Shown: one piece after another, positions 12,372 through 54,346 of the stretch
Layout of the letters: the number at the start of each line of letters is the position of its first letter
Position numbering within the stretch: the first letter of the stretch is position 1
Assembly (NCBI GenBank): GCA_001643675.2
Contig: LSRY02000006.1
Span: 372,001 to 436,000 of the forward strand
DNA length: 64,000 bases
Reading direction: 5' to 3'
From: Monocercomonoides exilis PA203
Taxonomy: Eukaryota; Protista; Preaxostyla
Position numbers and translations under genes: made by a program
Notes under the pieces: generated by a model
Databases searched by the model: none
Seen by the model: the letters and a program-made list of their open reading frames with translations, nothing else
Told to the model about the DNA's origin: nothing

Positions 12372-12402
<31 letters not shown>

Positions 12403-15400
12403 CAACAGCAGTGTTTTCAGCTGCAGTAGAAGAAGCAGAAGACGCAAGTGCAGAAGATGGCAAAGCATCAGTTCCATCAGCATCAGTGCAAGATGAAGAA
12501 GAAGAAAGAGGAGTAGAAGGGTTGGATACAGAAGAAGATAAACTTAAAGAAGGTATATGCGGAGGAAGAGAAGGTTGATCAGAAGAACCAGATTGCAACG
12601 AACCAGAATTAGAAAGTGAATAAGAATTAGACGGAGTTGAAGCAGAAGAAGACAGATTGGAAAAAGAAGAAGGATCTGGAAAAGAAATATTTTGTATAGT
12701 TGAATGCGGAAACAAAGAAGACGCTTTGGGGGATTTGAATAGAGAATTGCTTTGTTCTGCAGTTGACAAGAATCTGGATGGGGATAAAGACTGACTGGTT
12801 GATCGAGAAGCTGATGGTGTCGGATGATAAGCAGAAATCGGAGAGAAAGAAGAAGACAGATTTGAGTGAGACATTGAAATTGAATCAAAGTTCGCTGAAA
12901 GCGAAGAAGCAGAATTGAACAAGGACTGTTTGGATGAATCTGACGACGATTGCAATGCTGGTGATGAAGATGCCATGGATGTTGACGATGCTGTTGACAA
13001 AGCTAATGGTGATAGTGTAAGTGCTGAATACGACCCATTCATCGCAGACAAAGGATTCTCCAGCAATGGAGACTTCAGCATCAGCGGTGAGTTTGACTGG
13101 GAGACAAATGAAGAAGGCGCCACTGATGAATTCAAAGCCAGTGAAAGACTCGACATTGACGAGGCAGGTGAGTGCAGCTCGTTTGAAAGGGGCATTGAAG
13201 AGGGCGATTCCATTTTGATTGGAGCGGGTGACAAAGATGTGGACTGAGGTATCTTTGCAAGTGGAAACAAAGCAGGCGGGGTAAGCACAGAAAGCACTGT
13301 AGATGGAGAAGATGGGGTCGCAGAGGATGAACTTGGTGTAACCATCTCAGTTATGCTTTCTTTGAACAGGGACAACGCAGACAAGGCCTGCTTCGATGCA
13401 TCAGCATTAGTGATACTGTTGTTGTTGTTGTTGATCTTTGTGGATGAATGTGCCTCTGAACCAGAACTTGCAAAGGTGAACGGCGAGGAAAGCGACATAG
13501 AAGCCAGTGGAGAGTATATTGGCGGCTGGCGTGGTGTCTGTGGCGAATGAAACATCTGAGACGGCTGTGGTGGTTGTGGTGTTTGTGATGGTTGTGATAG
13601 CTGAGACGGCTGTGATGACTGTGATGGCAGTGATGGCAGCGAAGGAGAGCGGGTGGCTGGTGAATTTGGTGGCGGTGTGTGATTCAGAGTGATTTTCACC
13701 CGCGTGAACAAAGGATAATTTTGTGTGGGGCAACCGGAGCTTGAAGATGCCTTGGGATCGAGATTGGCAGACGGCAGGGCGAAGGTAAATGACCTGTAAA
13801 CTGGAGACGATGAAGCACAACTGTTTGACAACGAAGCTGATGAAACACTGGAGGAATGTGATGGCAATGGGGTTGATGAAGACACAGTTGACAACGAAGA
13901 TGGCGATGAATTCACAACTGAAGCACTCGACTTTGCTGATGTGGGCATACTCAATGTGCGTGGGAGCAAAGAAGAAAGCGACTCCAAAAGAGGATCAAGT
14001 GAAGAAATTGACGAATTAGGTGAAGGTAAAATCGAAGGCAATGAAGATGCTGAGGCAGAGCCAGAGTTCGGTAACAAAGAACAAGATGAAGTTGAGCCAT
14101 TTTTGATAAACTGCTTTTGCGCTGCTTCTTCACTAGCACTTTTTCCAAAGCAGATGTCTGAATCGAACTTCATGTGATTTTCTGAATGGAAATCTTCTTT
14201 TCTGCAATTTGCTTTTGAAACATCGCTTTTCTTCTCTGTTGCAGGCTTGTTGCTGGTGAAAAAAAGGTTGTATTCTTTGAATCTTATTTCTGGAGTGCTT
14301 TGATGGTTTCCTTCAACAGCTTCTGTGTAACCTTGTTTGCTGCAAGAACCTTTCACAGTCGTGTTTGATGAATCTTTCTCAATTTCAAAGTTATCTCTGC
14401 TGCATTTCAAATGAGTCTCTTTCATTGTAGATACGTCAATTTCATTAGCTTCTTCTTTTCCTTTCAAACTTATGTGAACGATTTTTTCTTTTGCTTCTCT
14501 CGATAAAGGCAGTCTTTGTATCTTTTGTATGTTTTGTGAGACGTTGTCACAGCTCGACTTTATTTTCTCTTCTTTTCTGTCAGTTGAAAACACCATTTTA
14601 TCACCTTCACTTTCTGCTTCACAAAGAACTCCATCCATTCGCACATCCGCTGCAATCATCTCACTTTTATATTTTTCTTCTTTCTCTTCTTTTACTTCCC
14701 GCTTCTCTTTCTCTTTCATTTTCTCTTCAAAAGTCATTCTTTCTTCTACCATATCACCTTCGTTTCCACGATTATCTTCGCCTTCAATGCTGTCTTCTGC
14801 TTTACCGCGTTTGCTTCCTTCTTCAGAAATATTGTTACCTTTTTCGCTCTTCTTTTCTGGTTCCATCATGTGCTTGGAATATCTATCGTTCTGAGAAGGC
14901 ATTGCACATTGAATACTTTCGTCTTGTAAAGAATTGTTATCTTGATCAGTCTCCTTTCTTTCCCTTTCTTCAATCAGCTTTTCATTCAACACTATCTTTT
15001 TCGATTCATAACTTTTTCCAACACTTGATCCATTTTTCAGATGCGTAGAAGCAGATTTCTTAAGCGATAATGTTATAATTTTATCTTTCTCAACTCTAAC
15101 GAGTCCTGATGATCTTAGCATTCGGATATTTGGAGTTTGCGACGATATCGTTCGCTTTTGAACAACGTTTCCACTTCTCACTTGAGATCGTTTTGAATTG
15201 ATTGATTCATTTTTTATTTGATCCAATTCATCTGAAAATGTTTCTGAATCGTGAAAAGCATTTGATTTTTGATGTTTTTCTTTGCTTTCGTACAGAGAAG
15301 AATATTCAGATGATTGTTTTTTTTCTATGCTTGATTTTCTTTTCAAATCATCAAGTTCCATTTGTTGACCACTTTTGAACTTTCGTTTTTTCGCATAAGA

Positions 15401-15709
15401 GATTTTGTCGCGCTGTTCCAGATTCTCTTCATCAGTTCTATTCTTTATGGCATCTTCGTCATGGGTTGGTTGAATGGCGCTGTCAAAGCTCTTTGATATT
15501 GTTGTTTTCTCTTGTTGTTTCATATGTGAACATGAGAGAAGCTCTGCTGATGGATAAGAATCATCAGACACGATAGTTGTTGCATTCTTAAGAGTTTTAT
15601 TTGAATGACGATGATGCTTTTCACCTTCACTTCTTCTTCTACGAGATTGATTTCTTTCACTATCTTTACATTGCTTTGCCGTCTCAGTTTCTGTCAGACT
15701 ATTATGCAT
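4538..15709 (-). CDS. ATAD2: ATAD2/Yta7/Abo1-family AAA+ ATPase (histone chaperone) with degenerate bromodomain and large low-complexity insertions
   Basis: VGGL..LHEMIVLPLLFP; Walker A GPPGTGKT (~10754-10777); family-diagnostic FFMRKGADVLSKWVGE; Walker B [55 protein letters not shown]. Degenerate second AAA module (ILFCGQSGSGQ; VLFIHRIDLLW) and LRELRI preceding bromodomain-like helices. Confidence 0.93.
12219..12402 (-). repeat. TCN trinucleotide tract encoding ~60 near-pure serines in ATAD2
   Basis: GAA/GAG/GAT repeats on the + strand; poly-S in the translated ORF. Confidence 0.9.
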
Positions 15710-15972
15710 CCGGTTCTTCTTGTTAATATATATTGAGATCTACAAAATAAATGTGAAAATTTTTGGGTTTTACTCTCTTTTCATGAAAAAAAACAAACAT
15801 ATTAAATTTCCTTTGTGATTTGTAACATTTTATGGGTATTATTCAAATTTAGTGTGAAATCTCAAAATATTTTATGGACTCTTTTTCAATTTCCATTTTC
15901 ATTTGAAAATTTTCTTGAAATCAATGTCTAATTTCGGAGTATTTGAGAACAAAGAAAAAAGTATGGGTAACA

Positions 15973-18275
15973 ATGTTTCTCCACATCTTATTTATTGTGT
16001 CTCTGCTTTCAGCAGTTGATTTTTTTGAGCCATATAAACAAAGAAATCCACTAAGAAAAGTGTGGAATGAAGCTGTTGATGAAGGAGGAAATCCTTTGCT
16101 CAATTTGCTATCAAGAGCTTATAAAGTTACAAAAGAAGGCTGGAAGACTATTAAAAAGACAGCTCATACAATTTCCACTTCAAAATCACAACACTTTCTT
16201 AGCGAACGTCTTGGGCTTAACACTTCTGAAAACAAAAGTGCATATTCTCAAAACAAAACTCAAAATGTTGATCCAACGTGTAATGGGCATGGAACTTACG
16301 TGAACGGGAAATGTACGTGTACTGGAAATTACTTTGGAGAATCTTGCCAATATACGTGTAATAACGGAGTTCTTAATCAAGGATTTTGCAATTGTAATGA
16401 ACATTGGAAAGGACCATTCTGCGATATTTATTGCGATCAAGGCTATTATGATCCTCGACTTCTTCCAAGTCAGTGTCATTGCCTCGAGAATTATACATCT
16501 TCGGATTGTAGTGTTAAATGTGCAAATGGAACATTTGACGGAACACGTTGTGTTTGTGAGCGAGGTTTTCAAGGTGATGCATGCGACGTGGAATGTTATC
16601 ATGGAACAAGAGAATTACGAGACGGAAGTAATGAACCTTATTGCAAATGCTTGCCTGGATATTTTGGAATTTCATGCCAATACTCAGAGTGCTATCTTGG
16701 AGAATGGGATGATGTATGTTACAAGTTTAAAAATGAAATTGTTTCAGGGAGTTCGTTTTCATTTGAAATAAACCAATTAGCAAAATGCAATTTTTGTTTA
16801 TTTTAGCTTTTAATTTTTAATGATAACTTTCAAAAAAATATTTTTTTTCCAATTTTGCTCATTCTTTGATTATTGAATGTGATTATTGTTCAATTATTTT
16901 TAATAATTCAGGCATCAGATCCAAACCGTACTTGTAAGTGCTACGCATATGCGTATCATCAAGGTAGATTATTAAAAAACGAAGCAAAAGAAAGAGGAGA
17001 AGAAGTGGATGAGAGTGATGATGATGACGACGATGATGAAGATGAAGAGATGGTTTATTGCGACAAGCTTAGAGATGTCCAATGCGAGCTGGTTGTAACA
17101 AATCCAGCGTCAGAATGCTCAGCAAAGGAGCTGGAGTCAAATAAGAATGCATACTGCATCAAGTGGGAGAAGGACAAGGAGATGGAATTGACTTTTGGTG
17201 TCGAATGCAAATTCGAAACAGGAAATATTACAAGCGATCAACCTCAGGTTTGCATACAAATTTTTGCATGAAAATATGAAAGAATTTTTTTTTGATTAAT
17301 TTGAAATCTTTGCACATCTTAAATGCACACATTTATATTATGAACTTCAATTCTTTAATGTTTGAAAAACATTTTTCTTTATTTGTTTGTTTGGTTGTGT
17401 TAGGGATATGGTCGTGTAACAGGTAACATTCTCAATGAAACAACCATTGTGTCAACAGGCGGAGACATCATTTTCATGATATCTGACAAAGTGAAAATGG
17501 ATGTTGAAGCGCGCTTGGTGAATTTCAATCGCATGAAAAACAATAAACTGGTTTTGGAAAAGAAGTATTTTTCTGCAAAGGAATTGGTTTGCTTATTAAT
17601 GTGAACCGTTTTTTGGCTTTCAAATTGAGCTTTTATATTTTTTATCATTGCTTATTTTTATATGAATATAATTATTTCAATATATAAAATCATCCTTCTC
17701 ATTCATTTCAGAACTACACGCCATCAGCTTACGATGATCTTCCAGACTTTAAGTACCCCATCACTTTGAATCTCTCTATGCTTGATCCCGATTATCCCGA
17801 TTCGTTTGTCCCTCCTCTCAGCGACTTTATCGTAACAAACAGGATTTCAATGGAGCTTTCAGCAAAACTCCTCAACGACCAGCTGACTTTTATTTCTGGA
17901 ACAAATTCGACAGCAAAAGAAGTCAATCCGAAACGAGACATACAAATTAAGAACAAGTGGGTGTATATTGATTACGGGTTTATGAAGATACCTCCGTATG
18001 TTGCACCAAAACTGGATACGTTTTTGATTGTTGTGATTGTGTTAGCGTCTGTCGTTGTGCTGCTTGTGGCCATTTACCTTATCATGATGTGCAGAGAATG
18101 CTACATTGATTACAAAGAAGATAAGGCTGAGGAGGAAGCAAAAAGACTTGCCGAAGAGAAAGAGATGGAGAACGAAGAAGAATGGAGCGACAGCGAGGAT
18201 GATTGGAGTGATAGTGATTTCTACAGTGATGATGATGAAAAGATCGATGTATTTTCAACACGCAAAGATGAATGA
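15973..18275 (+). CDS. EGF-like repeat type I membrane protein, ~607 aa; exons 15973-16713, 16912-17247, 17404-17586, 17712-18275
   Basis: Signal peptide MFLHILFIVSLLSA. Tandem C-x-C-x(5)-G-x-x-C EGF-like repeats. Three phase-0 GT-AG introns join the ORF-track pieces in frame. TM FLIVVIVLASVVVLLVAIYLIMM followed by an acidic tail. Confidence 0.85.
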
Positions 18276-19802: not shown

Positions 19803-20018
19803 AATATGGCTGATCCTTTTTGAAATCATTCTTTCGTTCGAGTTTTGATCAAAATTTATATCTCAATGGGATTTTTGTGAAATTTATGTTTTTGCAATAA
19901 CTGCATCATAAACAATAAGTATTTTCAGTTAAAACTCAATTTTTCAAAATCCCATTGAAAACTGTATTTTGATCAAAACTCGAACAAAAGAATGATTTCA
20001 AAAAGGATCAGTCATATT
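19803..20018. repeat. Long inverted-repeat (palindromic) element, copy A
   Basis: 19803-19855 matches the reverse complement of 19966-20018 at 51/53 bases. The inner extension TCAATGGGATTTT / AAAATCCCATTGA pairs too. Each arm contains the perfect palindrome TTTTGATCAAAA. Confidence 0.9.
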
Positions 20019-27800: not shown

Positions 27801-30800
27801 TTCATCGGTATTTGTTGTTGAAGGGAATGCCGAAAGTGTGCCTTCGATGAATATGACGAAGAGCGATTTTGGAGAAATGTCATTTGGGGATGGATGTGTT
27901 GTTGAGTGCCGCAAAGGGATTATTGAAGAGATGTCGGGATGCACATTTTCTTCTGTTTCTCGTTCGAAGGGAAGCGGAGGGTGCATACGTGTTGTGAACA
28001 ATGAGAATGATGATGATGGAAGAGATTACAAAGTGGAAATAAATGACTGCACATTTGAAGGGTGTGCTGTTGAAGAGGAGGGAACTGAGATTGGAGGAGG
28101 TGCGCTCTTTTATGAAGCATCAACATATACGAACCTGTTGATGAAAGAGTGCAAGTTTTATTGTTGCAGAGCACCATATGAAGGGGAACGTGTTGGATAT
28201 GGAGGAGGAATAATGCTGAAGATACTGAAAGAAGAAGAAGGAAAAGCAGGGTTTGTGATATCATCACCTGTTTTTTCATCTGACAAACCAAACAATGCGA
28301 AATATGGGAAGGATCTGTTCATTTCGTCTCCATCGCTTGCAAGCAGCGTCAAGAACGAAACTCTGCCATTTGTGAAAGACAGATTGGAGATGCTAACCGA
28401 AGACTCGATGAGAGGGCATGATGGAGGAGACAGAAAGTGTGCAATTCCCCTGATCTATTTCTGGAAAGCGATTGAATCGAGTGTGTATGTTGCACGGGAA
28501 GGAAACAATGTGGTTGTGTGTGGATTGGAAGAGTATCCATGTGGTTCTGTTGATTATGGGATAAAAAGAGGGAGTAACTTGGGGATTGAATCAATTGCAG
28601 TTCAGGGGATTTGTGATGTGAGGAGTGAAATGAGTGTGAGTGGGATGAAGGTTGAAGGAACAAATATGGAATCAGACAAAATCCAATTTGCTCAAGCACT
28701 TGAAGGGGATGAGGAGGCTGTTGTTGAATGCAAAGGAATTGTTCAATTCAAAGAAGTGGGGATTCTGATTCCCAGCTCCTTTGACAACGGAGCAAGCATT
28801 CTCATTCAGACAAGCTCAGACGCAATCAAAACGAGTATTGTTTGTTGCTCAATACATATGAGTGACAATGTGGAAGGCGAGGTGTCATTTGTGCTGATCA
28901 GTGCGAAAAAAGGAATTGTTGAAATTGAAAAGACAAAGATGACAGGATTCTCAACGATGCACGAGATTATGAGTTTATCAGCTGATTGTGTGATTACCAT
29001 GAGCGATGTGGCCTTTGAAGATATTTCATTGATTGGGAAAAGCGCAATTGCGATGAGTGAAAGTGTGATTTTCAAAAGTGGAAATGATAATTCAGAAGAA
29101 ATATGGAATATTGTATTTGAGCAATGCACATTCATGAATGTGAAGCACAGTGTGTCAAACAATCCCTCATTGCTTTGCTGTGATGTGCCGAATGAAGTGA
29201 GATTGAAAATGGAGAATTCCACAATTGATGAATGTGGATCGACAAGCTCGAATGAAGGAGGAGGAATGTTTTTCCTTCTCAACGAGAAAGGGAGTTTGGA
29301 GATTAATCACACAAATGTGACAGACTGCTTCTGCTCGAACAATGGGAGAGGAGGAGGGTTGTTTTTGAAATCAATGAGCGTCACACAGAAGGCATTGCCA
29401 TTTGTGCTGTCGAACATTTCATTCCGGGGGAATGTTGCATTGAAAGGGAGGGATGTGTTTGTGAAGTGCACTGATCTTGACTCGCAGATAAGTGAATCAC
29501 AGTTTCTGATTAATTTTGGAGAGCCGTTTGTGAAGGATCTGGCTATTTGGGGATGCACATCAGACAGTTATGGGGATGAAGAGGATCTGTTGGGGAGGGT
29601 GTATGTGTTCAGGAGCGAATTCATATTTGTGTCATCGATTGTGGGGAACAGCAGCAACAGCAAGAACTGTGGGGAAATGAAGGGTGCATGCTCATCGCTG
29701 AATGTTGGGGTGAGCCACATCATTCCTTCAGATTATTCACAGTTGTATATCTGGAATGAAACAGAATTGACTGGTTCATGCTCCGCTCAGAAGGTGGCAA
29801 TCAAGTCGATGGAAGCGAACAGAAATGCTGAGATAAAAGTGAGAGAGATTGAGCTTGAGGGTGAGGGAGTTGTGACAATTTCAGATTCTGTTCGAATTGA
29901 GAAAGTTTCATTTGTTTTTGGTGGAAAGGAGAATGTTGTCTGCTCGTCTTTAATTCTCCAATTGAATGGATCTGTCATTCTCGAATCTGTTTCATTCTTG
30001 TCAGAGAGTAGAACAACAGAGAATTCACATCCCCTTTTTGATTTTTCTCTTCTTGTTGTTGAAAATGGGATATTTGAGGCAGAAAAGTGCAATGTTGATC
30101 ATTTAAAAATATTGAAGCCTGTGTTCATGATATTGAATTCAGAAAGAGCAACTTTCGAAGAGCTAACGATTTGCAATGCCCAATGCACAAGCTCAGTGAT
30201 TAATTGTGGAAAGAGTGAGAAAATAAGAATTTCGAAGTTGGCAGCAACAAACATCACTCTGCAAGGCGAGTGTTCGATTTCGATTGGCCATGATCCTTCT
30301 TTTTCGCTTTCATTGTTGCATTCGTCGTTTGAACACATCAGCCGTTCGGCATCAGATGCATGCATTGTTCACTTGTCGAACATGAGATCTGCATTTGAAA
30401 TGTTCAACTGCTCTATTTGTGATTGCACATCAGACTCTGAGAAAGGAAGTCAGGTGACAATATCTTCGTCCAACAACGTTCTGATGGAATTGTGCAAGTT
30501 TGAGGGAAACACAATATCCGAATCGGAAGAAATGAATGGAAGTGCTGAAAAGATCTGCCAGTGGAATGGATCAGTTGTTGATTTCACAAGAAGTGAAGTT
30601 TCTTTGAAAGAATCAACAATTAAAAATTCCAGTGAAGGAGGATTGTCAGTGAGAGGAGGAAATGTGGTGATTGAGAAAGGAGAGTTTGTGAGCAACAATC
30701 CATCGATTGGAAAATATCCCTCAGCTCGGAGAAACATATTGTGTTCGGATTCTGCTCAGCTGAATATCATAAGTCTGAAGGGAGGAGATGGGGTTTATCC

Positions 30801-32541
30801 CAATTCATCGATGTGGATTCTGAATGATGGATGCAGTTTGATGGGGATTGTTGAGGAGCGAGCATCGCCATTGTTCATCCCCACAGTGCGATGGGTGGAG
30901 ACAGAGGAGAAGGAAGGGGTGCTGGATGTTGTGTTCAGAGGCACACTTCTTCTGCCATGCAACCTGTCGTTTCGGGTTGTTTCATCTGTGGGGGATGTGG
31001 AGCAGATGGAGACACACGAGATAAGTGAGTCTGGGTTTGTGAGCGAAGAGGAAGTTCGTGGCACAATTGGGTTGGAGATGGTGAGGGGAGCAGAAGCGAG
31101 TGCGGAAGTGAGGGTGTGCATCTTGTTTGGAGATGGCCATTCTCCCTCGGCAACTGAGTCATTCATCCTGAAGAACAGGAGCGAGGTTGAATCGAAGGGA
31201 GATGAAAGGATTGTTGAAGGTGGAAAAGAAGGGAAATCGATATGGCCAATCATTGTTGTTATATTGGCTGTGATGTTTCTAATTGTTTTCGTTGTTTCGA
31301 TTGCATTGGCGGTCAGATGGAGAAAGGTTAAAAATGAAGCAGAAGATCTGAGAGAGATTGTGAATGATAACATCAGAAAGGATCCGAAGGCGTTTGAGAT
31401 GGTGACGATGGAGATGTCGCCTGAGGAGCAGTGGAGAAGAGCTGAGAAGGAGGCAGAGAAGAAGAATGAAGAGAGGATCAAGAAGAGGGTGTATGGGAAG
31501 CAGATGCAGCACTCGGAATCATCAGAGCATCTTCTATCTGAGAGCGGATCGACTGAATATATCCTTGGAAGAGACTCAGACAAGATCCCTCAATGGATGC
31601 TGGAGAAAGATGAAGAAGAAGAGGAAACAAGGAAGAGAACTCCTTCTCCATCCATTTCATCAACTTCAACAACAGACACTGACACAACATTTGTTCGATC
31701 GGAGAGTCTGTGTCCCACAACCTCATCAATGTCAAATCTGGTGGATGCGATGGCCTGTTCATCACCTCATGAGAAATTGATTGTGGATCTGAGGGATTCA
31801 CTGTTCATGTTGCTTCATGGAAGGAATAAAACAAAAGAGATGCCAATTGGTTCATTGAAGGAGAGGGAGCAGACAGCAGCCCAGATCCTGTTCTGGGTGG
31901 CAAATGGAGCACTCCACTCATTTGATGAAATGGAAAATCCTCTTCAGTCATTATCCAGTTTGAGTCCTCACATTGTATTGTTCTCAGAACACATGGTGAT
32001 CTGCATTGTGATGCATTCTGACTTATTGTCTGATGATGACTCAGATTCGTCTTCCATCTCTTCGTCAACTGTTGTGACTTCTGCAAGTGATGATGACGAC
32101 GAAGATGATGACCCCCTGCCCTCGTCAGCCTTTGAGGATGAGGATGACTTTAAAAAAGAGTGTCTGAGGTGGAAGGCGCCTGAGCTGCTGATCAACAAGA
32201 AGATGGGAGCAACCAAGGAGTCGGTGGCATTCTCGATCGGGATGATGCTGTGGGAGTGTCTGACGCTCCAGATTCCGTTTGGTGATTATGAGGCAGAGGT
32301 GGCAGGGCAGAAGATCGTGAATGGGGAGAGACTGGAACTGAGGAGCATTGAAACTTCTCAGTTTTTGCGAGTTGTGAAGTGCTGTGTGGCATGGAAAGCA
32401 GAAGACAGGCCATCACTGACTGAGCTTCGGAAGGAGTTTATCTGTTTTTTTCCATCAGGCGCAACAATGCTGACGATTACAGATGCAATCAGAATTGAGG
32501 AACCGAGCGGTGGGAGCGAAGGATATACAAGAAACAAATGA
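24829..32541 (+). CDS. Giant intronless receptor-like protein, 2570 aa: signal peptide, modular Cys/Gly-rich beta-helix-like ectodomain, single TM, cytoplasmic TK/TKL-like pseudokinase
   Basis: The ATG at 24829 gives signal peptide MRNIAGCFLFILAVVCSG. Repeated GGA(L/I)/GGG(I/L) and CxF motifs as in Pmp/pectin-lyase-like beta-helices. TM ~31240-31320. Kinase C-lobe motifs LRWKAPE, FSIGMMLWE...IPF and DRPS. Confidence 0.88.
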   Translation: MRNIAGCFLFILAVVCSGKSFKGDEKSIKSRKAGADGSGSLLQLSIVENKWNLKNSSVDLGGLSVIQTSWSGSSHVDEHSTLSISCSQIGWLSAASSNMIMVMGALNLKNVSLKDNGELSKTKSVAFMGKESASLLVSDSKWRNVGFCGKGSFLRSGEGGFEAIRHCEFDNITQRYFIEEGMKERTMMKASILEDCRIKSSMNVLEGGVVGGTEGSSFFSCSNCTFLQSERVDWKMKNTERNETTQNQSYVNAEWNGCSAPCGGALYVHDNSSATLTVENSSFVKCNATYTRGGGIFALNIGECTVKHSTFDGCFCASSEDCGGAGVEIDVLHIQARIENCFFKDGWSGNDGGGIGMWGVRATKTSDSVLGCFFKNCSGHNSTNGDGGGVLYWTAVDFVVIKNCLFQGCSSDYQGGGISMQVNSFGGNLVWFCFFHNNYAPKGNDIQVYDNFADSQLVWCYSTRTEGVRYYANGDKSEWLPNDGGKRRFVASKESQENAKDTFSCGLNESCACLSISHCLSQMISGFVEEIKVLSGTVVEGKGVDVGEKAISVNGVSSSGSIIETKFEGNGLSLFCVGTGKLCASDLSVVHNSSFENNRQCRLFEMKGNGSMDVKRMNISMDAAHSEERNIQNSLVKIDDGELKMQDVIWGQTFVTTSLISVPQESSVTLTLGNCTFNNIVKTAAGSSLMSVGEGSYSITFEGCTIDDCGSEDSEFGGGMTVEVGSGNSLNVKGGVVKNCYASATQGRGGGIGLKARNANADFLISSAFEGNRAKWGSDIFVDSPNLESTATSGKITSLTASFDTKSKMQGYENGDESFSIPLCIYLWNNFSGSAFVGGGSSSHDFSKCGYEEFPCSTIAKAASVHFEGKKKDVALLEPFAFEDELRLTSNEWSIKGKVGKIKCDVSDQKEGAQRGLIENTITASVIGIVFSMKKSLTFHERVFECCSGKLKLNECGMEGGTEAISTVLVKAIGGAVEVSEFATKNMKIGDSSVFVVEGNAESVPSMNMTKSDFGEMSFGDGCVVECRKGIIEEMSGCTFSSVSRSKGSGGCIRVVNNENDDDGRDYKVEINDCTFEGCAVEEEGTEIGGGALFYEASTYTNLLMKECKFYCCRAPYEGERVGYGGGIMLKILKEEEGKAGFVISSPVFSSDKPNNAKYGKDLFISSPSLASSVKNETLPFVKDRLEMLTEDSMRGHDGGDRKCAIPLIYFWKAIESSVYVAREGNNVVVCGLEEYPCGSVDYGIKRGSNLGIESIAVQGICDVRSEMSVSGMKVEGTNMESDKIQFAQALEGDEEAVVECKGIVQFKEVGILIPSSFDNGASILIQTSSDAIKTSIVCCSIHMSDNVEGEVSFVLISAKKGIVEIEKTKMTGFSTMHEIMSLSADCVITMSDVAFEDISLIGKSAIAMSESVIFKSGNDNSEEIWNIVFEQCTFMNVKHSVSNNPSLLCCDVPNEVRLKMENSTIDECGSTSSNEGGGMFFLLNEKGSLEINHTNVTDCFCSNNGRGGGLFLKSMSVTQKALPFVLSNISFRGNVALKGRDVFVKCTDLDSQISESQFLINFGEPFVKDLAIWGCTSDSYGDEEDLLGRVYVFRSEFIFVSSIVGNSSNSKNCGEMKGACSSLNVGVSHIIPSDYSQLYIWNETELTGSCSAQKVAIKSMEANRNAEIKVREIELEGEGVVTISDSVRIEKVSFVFGGKENVVCSSLILQLNGSVILESVSFLSESRTTENSHPLFDFSLLVVENGIFEAEKCNVDHLKILKPVFMILNSERATFEELTICNAQCTSSVINCGKSEKIRISKLAATNITLQGECSISIGHDPSFSLSLLHSSFEHISRSASDACIVHLSNMRSAFEMFNCSICDCTSDSEKGSQVTISSSNNVLMELCKFEGNTISESEEMNGSAEKICQWNGSVVDFTRSEVSLKESTIKNSSEGGLSVRGGNVVIEKGEFVSNNPSIGKYPSARRNILCSDSAQLNIISLKGGDGVYPNSSMWILNDGCSLMGIVEERASPLFIPTVRWVETEEKEGVLDVVFRGTLLLPCNLSFRVVSSVGDVEQMETHEISESGFVSEEEVRGTIGLEMVRGAEASAEVRVCILFGDGHSPSATESFILKNRSEVESKGDERIVEGGKEGKSIWPIIVVILAVMFLIVFVVSIALAVRWRKVKNEAEDLREIVNDNIRKDPKAFEMVTMEMSPEEQWRRAEKEAEKKNEERIKKRVYGKQMQHSESSEHLLSESGSTEYILGRDSDKIPQWMLEKDEEEEETRKRTPSPSISSTSTTDTDTTFVRSESLCPTTSSMSNLVDAMACSSPHEKLIVDLRDSLFMLLHGRNKTKEMPIGSLKEREQTAAQILFWVANGALHSFDEMENPLQSLSSLSPHIVLFSEHMVICIVMHSDLLSDDDSDSSSISSSTVVTSASDDDDEDDDPLPSSAFEDEDDFKKECLRWKAPELLINKKMGATKESVAFSIGMMLWECLTLQIPFGDYEAEVAGQKIVNGERLELRSIETSQFLRVVKCCVAWKAEDRPSLTELRKEFICFFPSGATMLTITDAIRIEEPSGGSEGYTRNK

Positions 32542-33711: not shown

Positions 33712-36700
33712 ATGGCAGCGACAATTCACGAGGATAAATCTACTAAAAAAGGTGGAAAGAATTGTCAAAAAAGGTCTGATGTATATTGTCCTGATTTTGT
33801 GACTGATACAAAGTCAGGAATTCGTTATCAGCGTGGTTCTGTTCTTGGGAAAGGAGGGTTTATAAAGATAATATTTTCATTATTTGTTTAATGTAATGTA
33901 ATATATATTAAAAGATTTGCACAAGTTTTTGAGTTTGTTGATACAAATACATGTGAAATTTTTGCCGGAAAAGTTATTTCAAAGCAATCACTGATAAAAC
34001 CAAGATCAAAACAAAAATTTGATTCTGAGGTTTTGATTAATAAATCTGTAATGCACCCAAATATTGTTAGATTCTATAATTGCTTCGAAGATGAAAATAA
34101 CATGTATTTGGTCATGGAATTGTGCAAGCATAGAGTTTGTTTTGTTCACTTCAATGCAATTTCTCCTAAAGCTTATTTACGATTGTTTTTAAAGACTTTA
34201 CATGATCTTTTGAAAAAGCACAAACGGATATCAGAGAACGAAGCACGACCTATTATTCTTCAAATAGCAAATGGGATATCTTATCTTCATTCAAAAAACA
34301 TCATCCATAGAGATTTAAAATTGGGAAATATTTTTCTTTCTTCGCAAAACCAATGTAAAATTGGTGATTTTGGATTAGCCGCACAATTGATGCATTTCAA
34401 TGAACGAAGAAGAACCATATGCGGAACACCGAATTACATCGCACCTGAAGTCCTGACTCGCGGGCGCATTACGAAGGAAATGAAAGAAAAGATGAAAGAA
34501 TATGAAAAAGAAGATATTGAATTCGTTAATGCAAGTGATGATGGCCTGAAAGAAGGTGATGAAAATGTTTGTGAAGAAGCAGAGACTTCACAGTCTTCTA
34601 ATTCTCCACCAGGTCATTCGTTTCCTGTTGATATTTGGTCATTGGGCGTGATTTTATACGTTCTTCTAATCGGAAAGCCTCCATTTCAGGAAAAAACAGT
34701 GGAGGAAACTTATTCCAGAATCAAGCGTGGAGATGTGAATTTCGAGACAGAGCCGCCCCTCGGCACAGACGTGAAGAAGCTCCTTAAAGGGATGCTTCTG
34801 GTGGATCCTTCGAGGCGATTAACGATAGGGCAGGTGCTTGACAGCCATTGGCTCAAAGAAGAAGCGATGATTGCAGAGAAAAATGAGAAATTGAGGCATA
34901 AAAGGCAAAGTCAAGTGTCACCGAGAACGCAGGATGTTTCTTCAAATAGTGCTGAAAGGACTAGGGATATGTACAGGTTTATTAATGAAAGCGGATCTGC
35001 TCGGACTGCTGCAATTGCTAATTCTTCTTCTTCTTCTTCTTTGCCTTCAACATCAGATGGCCAATTACAAAAAACGAAAAATCAATCACCTTCAGAATTT
35101 CCTCTTCAAACAGCCGAATGCGAACAAAATCAAACATCAGCGCCTATCACACAGAACTTATTAACCTTTAAAACTCCTCATGAACGTGTTTCAAGGGAGC
35201 TGTCAATTTCTTCTGGCAACAATGAAGCAATCACAAAATCTTCGTCTTCTTCCAACTTTCCTTCTCTTCCTTCTCTTCCCCTTGTTTCACATGAAGAGAA
35301 GCTTAGCATTCAATCTTCTGCTTTGACTTCTAAATCGCCTGTTCTGATTGGATCAGCCGTGGAAAACAGAAAATATTCAAAAGAAAGAGCTCATTCTGCG
35401 CCTCGCCAGCGGACGAGGGAGTCTGAAGAGCAGAGTGGCCTGACACGGAATGGAAGTGCTGGTTTGTATTCGAGAAAGTCCAATGCCGAAGTTGTGACAT
35501 CAAATTCAGCAGCGCAGCAGAAAGCTGGTGGCTTTGCTTCTACTGCTTCTTCTTCAACTTCTTCTTCTTCTTCCACATTTCAGTCAACTCCTGCAGTATC
35601 ACCATTGTCTGAGCTTCCTTTGCCTCCGCTTCCGCACACAAATTCTCAATCACAGCTGCATCCAGCAACATTCCCGCTTCTTCAAAAACCTCCTCTTCCT
35701 CCATCTCAGCGCCTGTCTTTGCCGCTTCACGTCAAAAGAAACACATCTCCTTCTCCATTTGCATTCACTCCGCAGCAGCTTTCGCAGGAAAAGCTGATAT
35801 CTCCTCGCAGTCTGTCATCGTCATCATCATCATCATCATCATCATCTTCTTCTTCTTCTTCTTCTTCTTCTTTAGCGGCAGGCAAGTCCTCCTCAAACTC
35901 TCTCATGTGTCTGTCTCAGATGTCACAACTGTCTGTTATTTCGGAGTCTGGACTCGTTCTAAACACACGAGACTGCGCATTTCTTGCCTCGTCAGCTGCA
36001 GAAGATGAGTCAGAAGAGGAGGAAAGGAAAAGCAAAAGTGAGAAAAGTGATGAAGATGAAGGGAGTTCTGAACAGTTCGCTAAGCAAAACAAGCAAAAAG
36101 AGAAGGAAGTGGAAATTCAAGTGGAAACGATGTTTTATGAGAGAAAAAATCAAACAACTGAAATTGAGAAGGAGGCATCTTCTTCAAATGTGAAAGCTAT
36201 GGAGTTAAAAGAAAAGAGCAGCCAAATTCATAATGATGTTCAATCTGATACTGCAAAGAAATGTTCTGAGTGTATTCTTCAACAAGATTTGGATGAGGAA
36301 GTATTTGTTAATGAAAAAATGACTGGTGAATCGACAGAAAGATCGAGTGGAATAACAAAAGTCGAAGAAGAACAAAGTGAAAAAAACGCAACTAAGATTT
36401 CTGGAACAAAAACAAAAGAACAAACACAAAACAACAGTGATAGTTCAAATGAGTCATCGTTCATTCGATTCTTGAAGGAGAGGAGAAAGAAGAGGGAAGA
36501 TCTTCGAGAAGATGCCAAACAGGAAAAATCAATCAAAACAAGGAAAGAAGACATTTTTGGAAATGATGCTGAAATGAATGAAAGGAAATCTTCTGATTCT
36601 TCGAAAGAGAAAGAGAAAGAGAAAGAGAAAGAGAAAGAGAAAGAGAAAGAGAAAGAGAACTGTTCAAAGCGACTTTCTTTGAAAGGAAAAGAGGATGAAC

Positions 36701-39700
36701 ACAACCAAGACTCAGAACAATGGACGCTTCTTTCGCGCTCCTCGAAGGATCTGTCTGCAACTGCTTCAACACTTTCATCATCATCATCTTCTTCCTCCTC
36801 TTCTTCTTCCTCTTCATCTTCCTCTTCATCTTCACCATCGCCATCAGTCCATTCTTCAATCTCCATTGGAACTTATTCACATCCAGTCGATTCTTACCCT
36901 CTTCCAAGCTCTACCCCTTTCAACAATCCACCTTCTCCAACGCTTTCTGCTTCCCCCTCAGTTCATTCGCTGCACATTCAGAAAGAGAAAGAAGGTTGTT
37001 TTATGAGTGCTGATGGCTCATCATCATCATCATCATCGTTGGTTTCTTCTGTTTCTGGTGAGTCTTCTCAATCAGAACAATTGACTCACAAGATGAAAGG
37101 AAGATCTGAAAAGAGGGAAAGAAAGGTGCACAAAAATAAGGTTGATGGAAAGGAAAGAAACAAAGGAAAAGAAATAAACGCCTTAACGGTTCTTTCGCCG
37201 CCACTTGAGAATTCGAATGTTGAGCAGAAAATATCTCAGCTGTCGATCAATTCTCATTCAAAAACAAATTTAACAGTTTTTTCATCAACTGAAACAGCTC
37301 CAAAACAATCACAAAATTCTGCTCAATCTGATTCTTCTCCACAACACCTGCTTTCTAAGCCTCTTAGCATTTCATCATCATTATCATCATCATCATTATC
37401 ATCATCATCATCATCTTCTTCTTCTTCTTCTTCTTCTTCTTCTTCTTCTTCTTCTTCAACAAGTGTATTTGATAGCAAAAGTATTCAATCATTTCATCCT
37501 TCACTTCACGCTGACCTTACCATTCCTCTTTCTCTTCCTCTTCCCCCTCCTCCGCCTCCACTTCATCTTCCTCCGCTGCATCTTTCTGAGGCGCTGTCGC
37601 CAACTTCTGCCATTTCGCTGCCTTTTCCCGACTCTTCGTCTGCTGTTCAGCTGAAAAAAGATATTTTTGAGCAAAGTTCATTGAAAGCTGAAGGCAATCT
37701 GTTGCCTTCTTCGAGTTTGTACTCAAATAGAACAATCGAACAAAATGGAATTGCATTGAAATCTCAACCACTTCAATCTGAAAAGACATTTGTCGCTTCA
37801 ACTTCAAAAGCAGCTTCAAAAGCAGATAAATTGCCTTCTTCTTCTTCTTCTTCTTCTTCTTCTTCTTCTTCTTCTTCTTCTTCAACTTGTATCATTTCGC
37901 CTTCACTTCAGATGCCAGCATCCCACACTTCATCTTCAAACACATCTCATCACAAATCATCTGTCACATTCACTTCTCAAAGAAAAGATTTGCTTTCACT
38001 TCGTGATTGCTTAAAAGTCAGCCTCAATCTTCTGATTAGCTCTATTCGAAACTTCTTCATTTCAAAAGACCCTTCTTTGCGTCTTCAGACTCCCACTGCT
38101 CCCATTTCATCCCCTTTTGACATGCACTCTTCATCTTCCATTTCAAACAATTTCACATCTTCTCATACATCATCTTCTTCATATCAGCATCAGTCATTCA
38201 TTACTGCATCTGCTTCTTTCTCTTCTTCTTCTTCTTCCTCCTCCTCCTCCTCTTCTATTTCTTCACCAACCAGAGTCGTTGCCTGGTTAGATGAAACTTC
38301 CACCACTGGTTTTGTGTGGTGGCTGAGCGACGGTTCATTCGGTGTGCTGTTCAATGACAACACAACAATGCTGATTTCAGGCGACTCCTCTCAAACATCC
38401 AAACAGAAGGACAAAAAGAGAGGTATTTCAAATAGCACCAATAAATCTACATCGAATACAGGAAGTGATCAGTCATTTGACACGCTGTTTCCTCCTTCGC
38501 TTGCATCGAAAAGGAACATTTTATTTGCCTCTGTCAGTTCTTGTTTGCTTCAGCAGCTGCAAAGCCAGTCTGTTGATCATCGATTGACAAGAGTGTGTTC
38601 GTCTGATCCAGAAATGGCAGAGAAAATCAAAAAGCTGAAGGAGATGTACAAAAGAGGATCTGAGCAGCAGCATGTCAGCTCGCAACAGAACTCGAAGAAG
38701 GAATTGAATTATGAAGAGGATGATGAGGAAGAAGAGGAGAGGGAAGAAGATGAGGAAGAAAGCGGAGAACGAGTTGATAATCCATCGGGAAAGGGTGATG
38801 GAACGGAAGGCAATGTGTATTCAAATGAGTTGGCAGACACTTCCACAGCGATTTTTGTTGTGAAATGGTTCAGAACGAAACAAGGAATTGTGATGATTTT
38901 GTCGAATGGAACAGTCCAAGTCAATTTCTTTGACCACAAAAAAATTGTTCTGTCTTTGAATGATCCAATTGAAATAGCATGTCCTTCTCCTTCTCCTTCT
39001 GTGAAATTTGATTCTGCTCAATCTCCTATTTCATCAGAAGAAGAACAATACGCTGTTTCAGCTTCCTCTCCAAATGCCAATCTCCCTTCTGTTTGCTTGT
39101 CTTCGCTTCCTGCCATGTTTATCAACGGCTCAGAAGGCCTGACGCTTCCTCTGCCTCAGCTTGTGGATGCTATCGCTGGCTCATCTTCGACTGCACTTTT
39201 TTCTCCTCCCTCTCAAATTCACAGCCCAACCACGTTTTCAATTGTGGCACTCAATGAAAAAAGTCCTCTTATGTCTTCGTCATCTCCACTTTTGTCGCCT
39301 TCGCTGTCTCCTCAGCCTGCTGCTTCACCATCGTCTTTAAATGGTTCATTGTCATCATCTTCTTCCTCCTCCTCCTCCTCTTCTTCTTCTTCTTCCAAAT
39401 CTCTTTTGTCCAACACATTCCGCTCTTCTCTTTCTTCAACTCTTCTTTCGCAGATTCTGGACAACTCCTCAAAGGTCTTCCCATCTGAGCTCTATCGCTC
39501 GCTCATTCACTCAGCACCTCCTTTTGTTCGGAGACTCGAATTCGTCCGACAGCAGCTTTTGGCAGTGCTGTCTGATACAAACATGAAATTGGATCAGAAA
39601 ACACACAAAGAAGCTAAAAATGACTCAGGAAATGAAAAAATGCATAATCAGTCTGCAAAACAATTGGATATTCCTGTGAAAGATAAAGGAGGAGAAAAAG

Positions 39701-40584
39701 AAAATGAAACAATAAGAATATTCGCTCGAAGTGACAGCAAGTTGGATCAAATAAGCGCAAATGTCAAAGAGCCTGCACAAAAACTGGATTATGAGCAGAC
39801 ACATGACTCATTTGCAGCAAGATCAACACAAAAGTTGCCTGAATCTCATTCACAGAAGTCACTTTCTCCGCCTTTGCAACCTTCAACTTTTCTTCCTCCG
39901 CCTCCTCCCCCTCCCCGCCGCCATCGTTCTCATTATTTGGTGAGAGAGAAAAGCAGCCAACAGCTTTCTTCAGACCAGCTATATACTTCTGATCATAAGC
40001 ATTCAGTATCACTTACTTCATCGAGTGTGAACTTGCATTCTTATTCTTCTCCTCCAGAAGACAATGATGAGCTTCAGAAAGTCCACCATCATAAAGCATC
40101 ATCACGTGAAAGAAAGGCATCTGAATTGTCTGATTTGAAAGGTCGTGTTTCTAATGAAAAAAGAAAAGTTCGATTTCATGACGAAAAGTATGATGATGAT
40201 GATGATGATGGCAAATACGAATCCTTTGGGCGAAAGCACCGCAATCATATTTTCACCCACCATAAATCTGAAGAGGAAAGAAGAACAAGAAAACAAAGTG
40301 AGGATTGTGATAGCGATGATCAAATTGAAAGAAGCTCCATCAGAAAATCAGAAAGAGAGGCCAAACACAAATCAAGTGAAAATTCTTTAAAGCACATTAA
40401 AAGGCAAAGAAGCGAATTATCAGAGAGAATTGAGCATTCTGAAAGGGAGCATCATTCCCATCGAAGAAGCACGCATAGCTCTCATCATCACAGCGCTATA
40501 AAGGATGATGCAGATGATAGCATACATTTGAAAGCAGATTTACACACTCGAGTTCATTCATATGCAAAGTACAAAGATTATTGA
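33712..40584 (+). CDS. PLK1: Polo-like kinase, ~2251 aa; exons 33712-33857, 33915-34134, 34195-40584
   Basis: Spliced N-lobe LGKGGFAQV..FAGKVISK; HRDLKLGN, DFGLAA, RRTICGTPNYIAPE. Polo box 1 VVAWLD..GF.W.LSDGSFGVLFNDNT (~38275-38375). Polo box 2 KWFRTKQGIVMILSNGTVQVNFFDHKK (~38860-38945). The symbol marks the family; exact orthology is not tested. Confidence 0.93.
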
Positions 40585-40782: not shown

Positions 40783-43377
40783 ATGTCTCATAGCTCTGGA
40801 AGCCGTAACATAAGGTTGCATAAAGCTTTAGATCGTCTTATTATATATTCTTTTAATGAATTTAGAAATTTTTCTTCAGAAAATGAAGAGAACAAAGATA
40901 AAGAAATGGATATTCTAAATTCATATTATTACAAACTTGATAAATTAACAGAGGAACGTTTGCTCACAGAAAGAGAACAAAATTATAATTTGGTTTGCTT
41001 TGTTATTTTCATATCCTTTTTATTATTGCAACTTCTTCTTTTTTAAATTATTAGACAATTGCACTTTTAATTAACATTGGTCTTCAAACAATGAAAGTTT
41101 ATGGAGATACATCGGTCGAGTGGTGTTCTGCAACATTGAATATCTCTTCTTATTATATCAATGTTGGAAATACTCAAGCTGCATTAAAACTATGGTATTT
41201 ATTATTTCTTTGTATTTCTGTTTCATTACCAAGTCATTTTTAATTCTTTAGCAATAATTTGGGACAATTGATAATAGAAAATAGAAATAACCCTCGTTTT
41301 GGATTGCTTTTACCGACTCTCTATTTTTCTCTTTATTTAATAAAAACAAAGGAATATCTCGATATGAAAAAGTACAGAGGACAAGGTTAATTTATTTGTA
41401 ATTTTTTTTAAATATTCTAATTCGCTTTTTTTGAACAGTTATGTACCCAACATCTGCTATACCACTTGCAAAGCCAGAAAAGCCTGGTTATAATTCTCCT
41501 CCTCTTCATCAGTTGTACACAGCCAATCATAAAGGAAAATTGGCTTTTCAAGACAAAATTGTAGGAAGTTCATTGCCACCAAAAGGATTCACAAATGAGA
41601 GCAGTGGGGACCATGATGCCGACTGTATTATTCATGAAGAACGAGAAAGGAGAAGAGCACTGATTCGAAAATACGAATCAGAACGGCAAAGAGATGGAAG
41701 CGCAAATTTTTCAAGAGGATACGATGCGAACGAAAATCAGAAAGAGATGAAGAGAGAATCATTATTTAGCAAGCATCAAAAGATGGTTCAAGAAGAAAGA
41801 GAGAAGGAGCTGTTTGAATCTCGCCAAAAGAAGATCGAAGAAGAAAGAGAGAAAATATTTGAAATGGCAAAAGATGCATCAGATGCAAAAAATGATGCTG
41901 ATGAATATTGGAGTCTTGCAATGGAGATGGCAATAACTGAATGCAAGTTTCCACCAATCAGGATTTTGTCTGTAAAGGATCTGAAAGAAAAGGCAGGTGA
42001 CACAATCAACTTCTTCTTTGGGGATTCGAACGCAAAAATCAAAAGGACAAGTGAAAAAAGTATTTCTCCGTCTCTTTTTTTGTCTTCATCGTCTGCGGAC
42101 TCTTCGTTTACGCCAGTGCACATTACATTTCCGCCTGCTGTTTTGGCTGAATATCACAACATCCCTGCATTGCTCTGTAAAATGAAGGCGCAACAGATGA
42201 GAAAAGATGAAGCAAAAGAAGATGATAACGATGATTCAAATGAAGAAAAAGCTACTGAAGGAGATGAAGAAGACGAATCCAAGCCAACAAGCGTTTCATT
42301 CTACAACAAGTCGCTTGGATGGCTCTTCCAGTCTCTTCTTTTGCAAGAGCTTGCAGCGAAGAAAAGATGGAGCGACTATGCAGACACGCTCACTCTTATC
42401 GGGCAGGTTATGGAAGAGATGGGAAGGATGGACGAAGCTGAGGAATATCTTCGAGAAGCCTACGAATGCCTTGTTGAGGTATGTATTTTTTCTCTTTTAA
42501 AGATGGCACGTTAATTGTCTTTTTTATTTTTTTTTTAACTTATTCAATTTTCATATTCTTTCGCTGCTATTCATAATTATTTGAATTTTCAATTTTAGAA
42601 ATACACACCAATTAGTGTCAGAACACTTTCAGCCGCAACTTTGCTGTGTCAGCATCTTGTTTCAAAAGGAGTTGTCGAAGAGGTTTTTGCTATTGCTTCA
42701 ATATATTCGCAAATAATCTTTTCAACATGATTATCCATTTATATTTCGTTGTTGTTATTTTCCTTTATTGCTTGCATGACATCTTTTAGGCCTTTCATTT
42801 GCTTGGCAATGCAATTGCTGCCTTTGAAGAAGAGGAGCAAATGCTGCCAATACCAGCGCTCACCAGAGCTCTTCGTGTGTATACTTCGATTCTTCTCCAT
42901 CAAAAGCAGTTTGAGATGGCTGAGCTAACAGCACGAAGGGTGATTCAGGAAGAAAAAATGATTGGAGACATCCAAAGAGAAGATGAAGGGAACGATGAAA
43001 AAGAAGGAAATGAGAAAGAGAATAAAATAGAACGTGAGAAAAAAGCTGAATCTTCATCGTATTCGCTGAAGAAGTCAATTGTTGATGTTGCACCTTTGAA
43101 TGAAGATCATCCTTTGTGTCGTGTGGCTGACGGATACAAAATGTTGGGGAGAGCCTTTTATGGACAGGAGAGATATACAGAAGCTCGAAAAGCGTTTCAA
43201 AGATCGAAAAGATTTTACTCAAGAATTTTAGGAAAAGATGCAATCGTTGTACAGAAAATTGAAGAAATAATTCAATGCTTAGCGGCTATGTTTGTTGAAT
43301 GTTGGACTCAAACAGAAGATGTTGATGAAGAAACGCTTTATGATGCATACGGAAGTCAAAATGCAGGGTTTGATTGA
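40783..43377 (+). CDS. TPR-repeat protein; exons 40783-40992, 41055-41194, 41252-41385, 41439-42478, 42599-42682, 42790-43377
   Basis: Five GT-AG introns with consistent phases. TPR-like helices ADTLTLIGQVMEEMGRMDEAEEYLREA and VADGYKMLGRAFYGQERYTEARKAFQRS..YSRILG. Confidence 0.78.
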
Positions 43378-47349: not shown

Positions 47350-49456
47350 ATGAAAAATAATCAAGATTTTTTGAATGATTATTTAAATGCACAAAGAGGA
47401 ACTGGGGGCAAATCCGATAATCATGATATCCAATTGTTTGCAGTTTTAAATATAATTATCTCTGAGATTTTATTTAAAATGTGAATAAAAGTGAAAAATT
47501 GATGAAACATTCAAAGCAAAAGCTGAAAAAATTGCACAAGGATTCTCTTTCAGATCAATCTTCCTTTCCATTTTTCTCCATTAACGACCATTTATTATGG
47601 CCATTTGTTTCGTTTTATAAACACTTTCCACGCATGTCAACGATCTTCATTTCACTAACTGCTATTACTGCATTTCTTGGGATGAGCTTGCCAGGTTTTT
47701 TTAACAGTAATTCTTCGATAAACAGAATGCCACTGAAAATTTGGAAGTCGCATGAATTAGACAGTGAATGCAATACAAATACAGTTTTAGATATGCAAGA
47801 TGAATCACCTATCGAAACTTCTATCGAAACTCCTGTTGAAACTCCATCCAAGACTCCTTTTGCATCAAATGAAAGAGTTGAAGATTTAAGCTCATCGAAA
47901 GAAGAAATTGCAAAATCACAAAAAAACGAATCGCAATCAAGCCATTTACTTAAACATGAGGAAGAGAATTCAACTGCAAATGAGAAATTTGAAGATGGTT
48001 CGGCTGAACAAGAAATTCTCTCAAATCAAAAAATTTCTATTGGCATCCCAACTGAATTGGAAAAAGGAATTAATGACGTTTGAATGCTTTAATATTTAAT
48101 TAATGTTTGAAATATTTTTTTTATTTATATGCTTCAGAAACCTGAAGTTCAGAAAGTTATTGAAGTTCATGTTGACAATAGCATTTACTCTTCTGAAGCA
48201 TTTTCAATGCCAGATGTTGCATATGCGTCAGTTGGAGGATATGTCGAGGAGCATTCTAAATTATATGGTAAAAAAGAATCTGATGCGCGCAAAGTTTCGG
48301 ACTCTAATGACAGAAATGAAGAGGAAGTGTCCAATAGAGGAAAATTTTCAATGCTTTATGATTCAGCAATGGAACACACTTCAAAATTTATCAAATTTTT
48401 AAAAGGGGAAAACAAAAATGCTGAGCAAAGTCGTGCTGGAAATGAGGTGCCTCAAGGAAAAGGAATAAAAGATGAAATCCCGATATCTATCCTGAATGAT
48501 TCTCTTCATATTCCTGATATGTCCAGTTTGGTTGTTATTGGAGTATGTAAAATATCCTTCGAAAATAAGATAACTTGGATTGTTATTCTTAACGTCCATA
48601 GTTGAAGAAATAGAATATGAATTTTATATCTTTTTGAAAAAATGAATTTTTAAAATTTTTTAAATTATCTTTTTCTTTTTCTTGAAAGCGTAAGTTTAAA
48701 AAAAAATATCTTCTTTTTAATTTCTAATTGATTTATTTGTGTTTAATCTTTAATTCTCTTTCTGTCATTTGTTCATATTTATTGCAGCGCAATGACATTC
48801 AGCCTGGAGAGTGCCTTGCATTAACTGGCTTTCCAAGTTATGTTTCTGTTTTGCTTTCGAAACGAAGTCATGTCAGAGCAGTGTCTGTTGGCGGGATGCC
48901 TCGGAATCTGTCATTAAATCCAACAACTGCTCCTCGCCATGTAAAGGCAGAGTGTCTTTGCAGAGAATATCGAGAGGCTTGTAAATTAAAAATGGAGTTG
49001 TTTCGTTTCAATAATTATTATCTCCTCTTTTCTCGATCTGCATCTCTTTCTGCACCTTATTTAATATTCTTCTCATTTATTTCGATAATATTAATAATAA
49101 CAACAAAATTTTCCATCAATATTTTTTCATCGCATATGCAGGAACAATCAGATCCATCGCCTATTCCTGTTGGCCGATGCGCTCCTCGAGTAGATAATTC
49201 TGATTTGTTGAACAGCACAGCCCAATTGAAGCTTTCTCGGGTGTATCCAAAAATAGTAGAATACAGCGAGCAAATCGCTTCTGGAGAATTTGATATGCCA
49301 CAGAGGTATTATGCGACATTCTATTCGGCAGAGGAGAAAGGAACAAAGATGAAATGCGACGCGGTTCGATTTTCGATTGAAAGTAATTATGGTAATAATG
49401 AATACACTTGCCTGTATCGTGTAAAGGTGCATCCTCCGGCCATATCTGAGGCATAA
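47350..49456 (+). CDS. SUN-domain (Sad1/UNC-84) nuclear-envelope protein; exons 47350-47435, 47492-48077, 48138-48542, 48788-48976, 49142-49456
   Basis: Single TM (TIFISLTAITAFLGMSLPGFF). SUN motifs DVAYASVGG, QPGECLALTG, TAPRHV and C-terminal VRFSIESNYGNNEYTCLYRVKVH. Intron phases are consistent. Confidence 0.88.

Positions 49457-54306: not shown

Positions 54307-54346
<40 letters not shown>

Follow-up and report, generated by a model that had tools for sequence, protein, structure and literature searches.

An exact 506-bp tract in two putative receptor genes of Monocercomonoides exilis points to recent ectopic gene conversion within a local cluster of paralogues

The window analyzed in this work, a stretch of 64,000 nucleotides from contig LSRY02000006.1 of Monocercomonoides exilis PA203 (hereafter C58), carries two long single-exon genes on its forward strand. 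Gene 1 (P0121; 24829-32541) is an open reading frame (ORF) for a predicted receptor pseudokinase of 2570 aa, with an ectodomain of type B and a C-terminal end of type Y. Gene 2 (P0001, locus L001; 55213-64000) continues for 437 bases past the window and encodes a product of 3074 aa, with a type A ectodomain and a type X C-terminal end. Other features of the window include a 3723-aa AAA ATPase on the reverse strand (4538-15709) and four forward-strand ORFs, namely an EGF-repeat ORF (15943-16806), a Polo-box kinase with long low-complexity inserts (34033-40584), a TPR ORF (41441-42514) and a SUN-domain ORF (48728-49456). Short, MITE-like palindromic elements, with arms of 60-73 nt that are 85-90% complementary, are found at 19803-20018, 53195-53395 and 54195-54700; the first two are 75-78% alike, and one of them lies upstream of each receptor gene.

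Genes 1 and 2 are intact members of the largest gene family of M. exilis, the products of which combine a beta-helix ectodomain, one transmembrane (TM) helix and a kinase remnant. Both are full ORFs with signal-like N-termini, and the best 120 matches of both protein searches were all from M. exilis, every named homologue being a MONOS gene. Pfam matches and the annotation of their relatives assign them to the published M. exilis 'tyrosine kinase' family, which comprises 332 genes, 320 of them TKL (PMC6759080; PMC8767320). A cysteine motif recurs in the ectodomains at a spacing of 340-420 residues. The last ectodomain module, to which the structural model is confined, is predicted to fold as a right-handed parallel beta-helix of the pectin lyase-like kind (pLDDT 74), and the model matches the PL6 lyase 7o79 with a Z of 27.1 and an rmsd of 3.1 A over 308 residues, at 10% identity; likeness of a modelled fold to a polysaccharide lyase or tailspike enzyme is no demonstration of function. 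This module is followed in the predicted model by some 100 residues of beta strands. On these models, the two genes most likely encode putative glycan- or microbe-binding surface receptors or adhesins, in which the kinase remnant would act as a scaffold.

The 3' portion of gene 1 is shared more widely. A step in identity at 30550-30640, where the alignments of other types to locus L015 start, marks the zone that joins ectodomain types A-D to a common stalk. From there on, stalk identity and the conversion fragments described below delimit a block common to all paralogues on the contig (30640-32295). The order within this 1.65-kb block is the end of the last beta-helix, the membrane-proximal beta domain, the TM helix, the juxtamembrane region and the kinase remnant. 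The single TM helix of gene 1 (31249-31314; 63091-63156 in gene 2) is the sole strong hydropathy peak, at 3.45 over 19 residues. Part of a kinase C-lobe, with subdomains VIII-XI, follows at 32149-32436 (Pfam PF07714 positions 163-257, E=1.9e-9), and the gene closes with the type Y end (32300-32541), which is also found in L008, L011 and L021 and is 91-97% identical to that of L008 and L011 and about 40% identical to that of gene 2. Tail similarity is confined to the C-lobe end of TKL/TK kinases, with ZAK/MLT, ILK and CTR1 as the best PDB matches, and the AlphaFold model of the tail reaches a pLDDT of 44.5. Among 78 tails, the HxD..K..N and DFG motifs were found in none and the Gly-loop pattern in one, and the subdomain VIII motif was present in 68. 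At the level of sequence, C-lobe homology and the absence of catalytic motifs thus identify the tail as a TKL-derived pseudokinase and not as an active TKL/TK kinase. Genome-wide, the tail also occurs by itself in at least 120 short gene models (~160-460 aa), which are fragments, split models or stand-alone tails.

Within the common block, positions 31096-31601 of gene 1 are identical to 62938-63443 of gene 2 at 506 of 506 bases (ungapped comparison, offset 31842), synonymous sites included, as the initial annotation had reported. At this offset, the longest identical run between the two genes measures exactly 506 bp and the runner-up 56 bp. The tract encodes the TM helix together with some 95 cytoplasmic residues after it and, before it, a linker preceded by the last strand or strands of the membrane-proximal domain; the 169-residue peptide occurs in these two proteins only, with the next paralogue differing at 10 of its 169 positions. 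The contrast with the flanks, also described in that annotation, was reproduced in full. In the preceding stretch (30640-31095), scattered substitutions affect 26 of 152 codons, 15 of them synonymously and 11 with an amino-acid difference, leaving 126 identical; no codon differs within the tract, and the synonymous difference in the last codon concerns base 31602, outside it. Beyond the tract, 54 of the 145 codons in 31701-32200 differ, mostly synonymously (45 synonymous and 9 amino-acid differences), and there are two short indels of 12 and 9 bp. Upstream of ~30550 DNA identity collapses and the ectodomains are alike at motif level, with 24-42% amino-acid identity. At the flank divergence of 6.6%, a 506-bp run would arise by chance with a probability of ~1e-15, and the tract comprises 212 polymorphic columns that match without interruption (by column permutation, global p=0.0003, which is the floor of the test). 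It is also the longest exact run of 120 pairs, among loci picked by likeness to the tract itself. Selection fails to explain this identity, since the other paralogues show 6-20% divergence across the same stretch.

Outside the tract, the two genes have different relatives. The ectodomain of gene 1 is 94% identical to that of L015 (P0122), 50 kb distant, and its C-terminus is 97% identical to that of L011. Eight other genes match the proximal ectodomain of gene 2 at 94-97% identity, and six match its C-terminus plus 0.5 kb of 3' flank at 92-97%. In AU tests, a sister relationship of genes 1 and 2 is rejected for the ectodomain (p=3e-39), the stalk (p=0.015) and the C-terminus (p=3e-6); the kinase segment is uninformative (p=0.2). 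The flanks of each gene thus retain an ancestry of their own, and no reciprocal product was seen. The separate segment trees that had been proposed as a check are hence incongruent, and this incongruence, together with exact identity at synonymous sites, supports the recent gene conversion put forward in the initial annotation. Two further observations concern the ectodomains. The 94% DNA identity of gene 1 to L015 (24829-30000) is interrupted, between stretches of 96-100%, by sharp divergent patches at residues 351-450 (~60%), 651-800 (~83%), 1251-1300 (74%) and 1651-1750 (~73%), which are either imported patches or hypervariable loops. In gene 2, the best relative of the distal module (residues 301-450; 56113-56560) reaches 65%, with adjoining parts 88-95% identical to paralogues, so that its ectodomain appears to be itself a mosaic with a variable tip.

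The partners on either side also bear on the direction of transfer. Locus L003 is close to gene 2 on both sides of the tract, with an ectodomain identity of 96-98% and the same TM type, and just past the 3' border gene 2 and L003 have in common a C base and the insert of a 12-bp indel in a poly-Glu stretch (31608-31609), an insert that gene 1, L008, L011 and L020 are without. Gene 1 is L015-like upstream of the tract and L008/L011-like downstream, and is close to L003 inside it only. Because gene 2 tracks L003 across both borders and gene 1 resembles L008/L011 past the 3' border, gene 2 is probably the donor and gene 1 the recipient, although the donor may since have been lost or changed. The tract ends 7 bp short of the 12-bp indel at its 3' side; base 31095 is private to gene 1, and the 5' border may therefore be displaced upstream by as much as 9 bp. 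The initial proposal that the tract pairs an ectodomain with a tail does not agree with this arrangement: both flanks of each gene revert to other partners, and the tract is thus a patch that made no new pairing of ectodomain and tail.

A search of the M. exilis assembly (82.3 Mb, 101 contigs) yielded 1027 candidate loci, of which the 30 best, chosen by likeness to the tract, entered the DNA analysis with 3.5 kb each. The GENECONV-type breakpoint test that had been suggested, run as a gap-free scan over the 16 paralogues on C58, returned 37 globally significant fragments distributed over 30640-32219. A scan among nine type A genes gave 24 fragments, 10 of which are located upstream of the tract position and reach as far as 1.3 kb into the ectodomain. 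Four-gamete incompatibility between sites is 0.26 at a spacing of 1-10 bp and grows to 0.57 beyond 60 bp (p=0.0005 by permutation), whereas simulations without recombination remain flat at 0.32; linkage in the block breaks down within 60-100 bp. The farther apart two genes lie on the contig, the lower is their block identity (Mantel rho -0.59, p=0.0002) and the shorter their longest exact run (Mantel rho -0.34), and the three longest exact runs (506, 377 and 331 bp) join genes 14-34 kb apart; orientation had no effect. Local duplication also yields such a decay, and a sample of one genome gives neither a conversion rate nor a split between mitotic and meiotic events. Elsewhere on C58, L006 (246 kb, minus strand) and L007 (236 kb, plus strand) face each other as an inverted, convergent pair and have exact runs of 2121 and 974 bp in common, the result of either a very recent inverted duplication or a long conversion.

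At the level of whole genes, three ectodomain types (A, B and C) and three 3'-end types (X, Y and Z) coexist on C58 in eight of the nine possible pairings, and the switches between types fall inside the shared block. The initial view of variable ectodomains attached to a common signalling tail therefore holds for the variety of pairings but not for the tail, as at least three unrelated types of C-terminus and 3' flank were distinguished, and gene 1 differs in type from gene 2. Among 18 other C58 copies, which include all types, the stalk shows 90-96% identity; elsewhere it reaches at most 84%, with the exception of two copies (92% and 88%). The kin of the gene 1 ectodomain reside mostly on other contigs, 13 of them on C27 alone, at 78-85% identity. 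Since off-contig type B relatives of this kind are only 71-77% alike over the last 2 kb, stalk included, the junction of type B with the local block was probably formed near 30550-30640. No long homology other than the shared block connects the types, which makes this block the site of their re-pairing, and re-pairing located there is what ordinary homologous recombination predicts.

Taken together, these data very probably reflect a recent, non-crossover ectopic gene conversion, in which ~0.5 kb of gene 1 was replaced with sequence from gene 2, located 32 kb further along the contig, or from a copy identical to gene 2 in the block. M. exilis appears to be monoploid and to lack NHEJ, while homologous recombination and most parts of mismatch repair are present (PMC6759080). 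Before replication, a paralogue would thus be the only available repair template. Homologous recombination would have mended a break in gene 1 with the nearest similar paralogue as template, and copying would have stopped just short of the 12-bp indel. Repair on nearby paralogues would produce tracts of tens to hundreds of bases, which is the range reviewed for interlocus conversion (PMC3924818). Repeated conversion would then turn the stalk-TM-tail block of the ~20 genes on the contig into one locally mixed pool, and rarer exchanges running out of the block, be they long conversions, crossovers or local duplications, would place ectodomain types on different 3' ends.

The initial annotation had gone further, viewing the tract as anchored on the TM and juxtamembrane region and as a candidate new system in which variable ectodomains are paired with a common signalling tail. 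The eight pairings found on the contig and the location of the type switches within the shared block are compatible with such a dedicated system, and the TM helix is covered by 3 of 10 long tracts. This coverage, however, is not significantly above expectation (1.3, P=0.12), tract starts are scattered over 30640-32072 and occur in the ectodomain too, and tract ends are likewise dispersed over 30640-32219 and the ectodomain. The TM helix is moreover the least uniform part of the block, with an amino-acid difference in 43% of codon pairs, against 9% in the stalk, 14% in the juxtamembrane region and 6-7% in the kinase remnant, which is precisely why a tract spanning it stands out. (Several TM variants and two juxtamembrane variants are freely mixed inside the conserved block of the C58 paralogues.) The tails fall into types instead of being constant, and nothing resembling a silent-cassette design can be seen: each partner is a complete gene, 28 of the 30 loci are open over 3 kb, with interrupted frames in L012 (C31) and L023 (C1) only, no donor cassettes or single expression site were seen among these loci over 3 kb each, and no boundary motif was shared at the tract borders. 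Ordinary ectopic recombination fits all features, and a dedicated, TM-anchored system is very unlikely.

Identity might also have been created by the assembly, if Canu read correction, Nanopolish and ten rounds of Pilon had erased real differences. The assembly paper does report that multi-copy parts were polished unevenly (PMC8767320), a 2x300 fragment would be about as long as the tract, and synonymous identity rests on one assembly. Nonetheless, both full proteins are letter-identical in NCBI (ONT-based) and in EukProt (454-era gene models), and that of gene 1 is found exactly in NCBI, UniRef and EukProt. EukProt would carry the older, 454-based models, as MONOS_12941 and 16048, both split in this set, appear in fused form at NCBI, and as none of the newly added models seen (numbers above 16767) bears a eukprot tag. 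A collapsed repeat is thereby largely refuted at the protein level, the agreement of two assemblies from different reads extending to amino-acid sites only. Polishing would have had to keep flanks 5-7% apart distinct, the nearest other paralogue still differs at 10 residues of the tract peptide, and the older, imperfect mosaic blocks are beyond its reach; these comparisons make an assembly artefact unlikely, and erasure by polishing exceedingly so. A pair of closely spaced crossovers, be they reciprocal or involving a third copy, would be in line with the crossover-like joins of ectodomain and 3' types in the family, but a reciprocal swap exchanges segments and leaves them non-identical, and this reading demands a sister chromatid or a lost product as well as two events within 0.5 kb, so that we deem it most unlikely. 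The least probable of these readings is that the tract stayed unchanged after a recent duplication of the whole gene or under strong purifying selection. Even though the tail is conserved at the protein level (65-95%), synonymous identity is found in this pair alone, the ectodomains are too dissimilar, and outside the tract genes 1 and 2 do not group as sisters in the tree tests. Both variants are refuted by how sharply synonymous divergence differs between the tract and its flanks.

Recent conversion between gene 1 and gene 2 does not differ in kind from interlocus gene conversion as reviewed elsewhere, with which it shares the non-reciprocal transfer of sequence from one paralogue to another, tract lengths from tens to hundreds of bases and over-long identical runs (PMC3924818); the density of events in the M. 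exilis cluster is high, with linkage lost within 60-100 bp. In the RPP8 cluster of plant NLR genes, receptor paralogues on one chromosome likewise share variation through intergenic conversion and crossing over (10.1101/694240). As opposed to RPP8, the M. exilis genes encode putative membrane receptors with beta-helix ectodomains, at ~20 loci in 1 Mb, and their sharing falls with distance, whereas in RPP8 more is shared with the distant copy than within the tandem pair. For the var genes of Plasmodium falciparum, exchange has reportedly been measured and concerns an exposed exon at ~63% identity, and expression is said to be exclusive. Exchange between types in M. exilis, by contrast, is seen in a membrane-proximal block that is 85-95% identical. 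Both var (PMC4270465) and DBLMSP/DBLMSP2 (PMC10919680) nonetheless resemble the present case as surface families of protists with in-frame mosaics that keep domain order and with conversion between diverged paralogues. Previous work on the M. exilis 'tyrosine kinase' family provides a count only (PMC6759080; PMC8767320), whereas the tail described here is without catalytic motifs. The ectodomain fold and the mosaicism of the family are not described in the papers that we found. The transmembrane kinases of Entamoeba histolytica reportedly have a different ectodomain and largely intact kinase motifs. They too are expanded single-pass receptor kinases of an anaerobic gut protist, with many partial copies (PMC2880585). 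Programmed cassette conversion shares with the M. exilis receptors a segmental, non-reciprocal transfer that results in mosaic genes. Trypanosome VSG, Borrelia vlsE, Neisseria pilE and chicken Ig rely on silent donors and one expression site, and the variable part is targeted. Silent donors, a single expression site and clustered breakpoints were not seen at the M. exilis loci covered here. Neither conversion nor this receptor architecture is treated for oxymonads in any paper that we found. The process is hence a known one, ordinary and very frequent here, in a family not yet analyzed for conversion in print.

A single tract of this kind is ordinary, and the pattern across the family is of modest value; it would carry greater weight if exchange were both fast and selected. 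We consider it improbable, for now, that each chromosome-local receptor cluster is a selected combinatorial library, in which a homogenized stalk-TM-tail block is kept as an exchange hub for fast re-pairing. Were this the case, beta-helix ectodomains, TM variants and cytoplasmic ends would be re-paired fast enough to matter, and would serve an asexual, monoploid gut commensal as var genes serve Plasmodium. More generally, kinome counts and single-gene trees appear unreliable for the 'tyrosine kinase' family, and a monoploid genome without NHEJ might be used for the direct measurement of ectopic conversion. The analysis conducted here thus suggests that the largest gene family of an amitochondriate model protist evolves as chromosome-local recombining pools.
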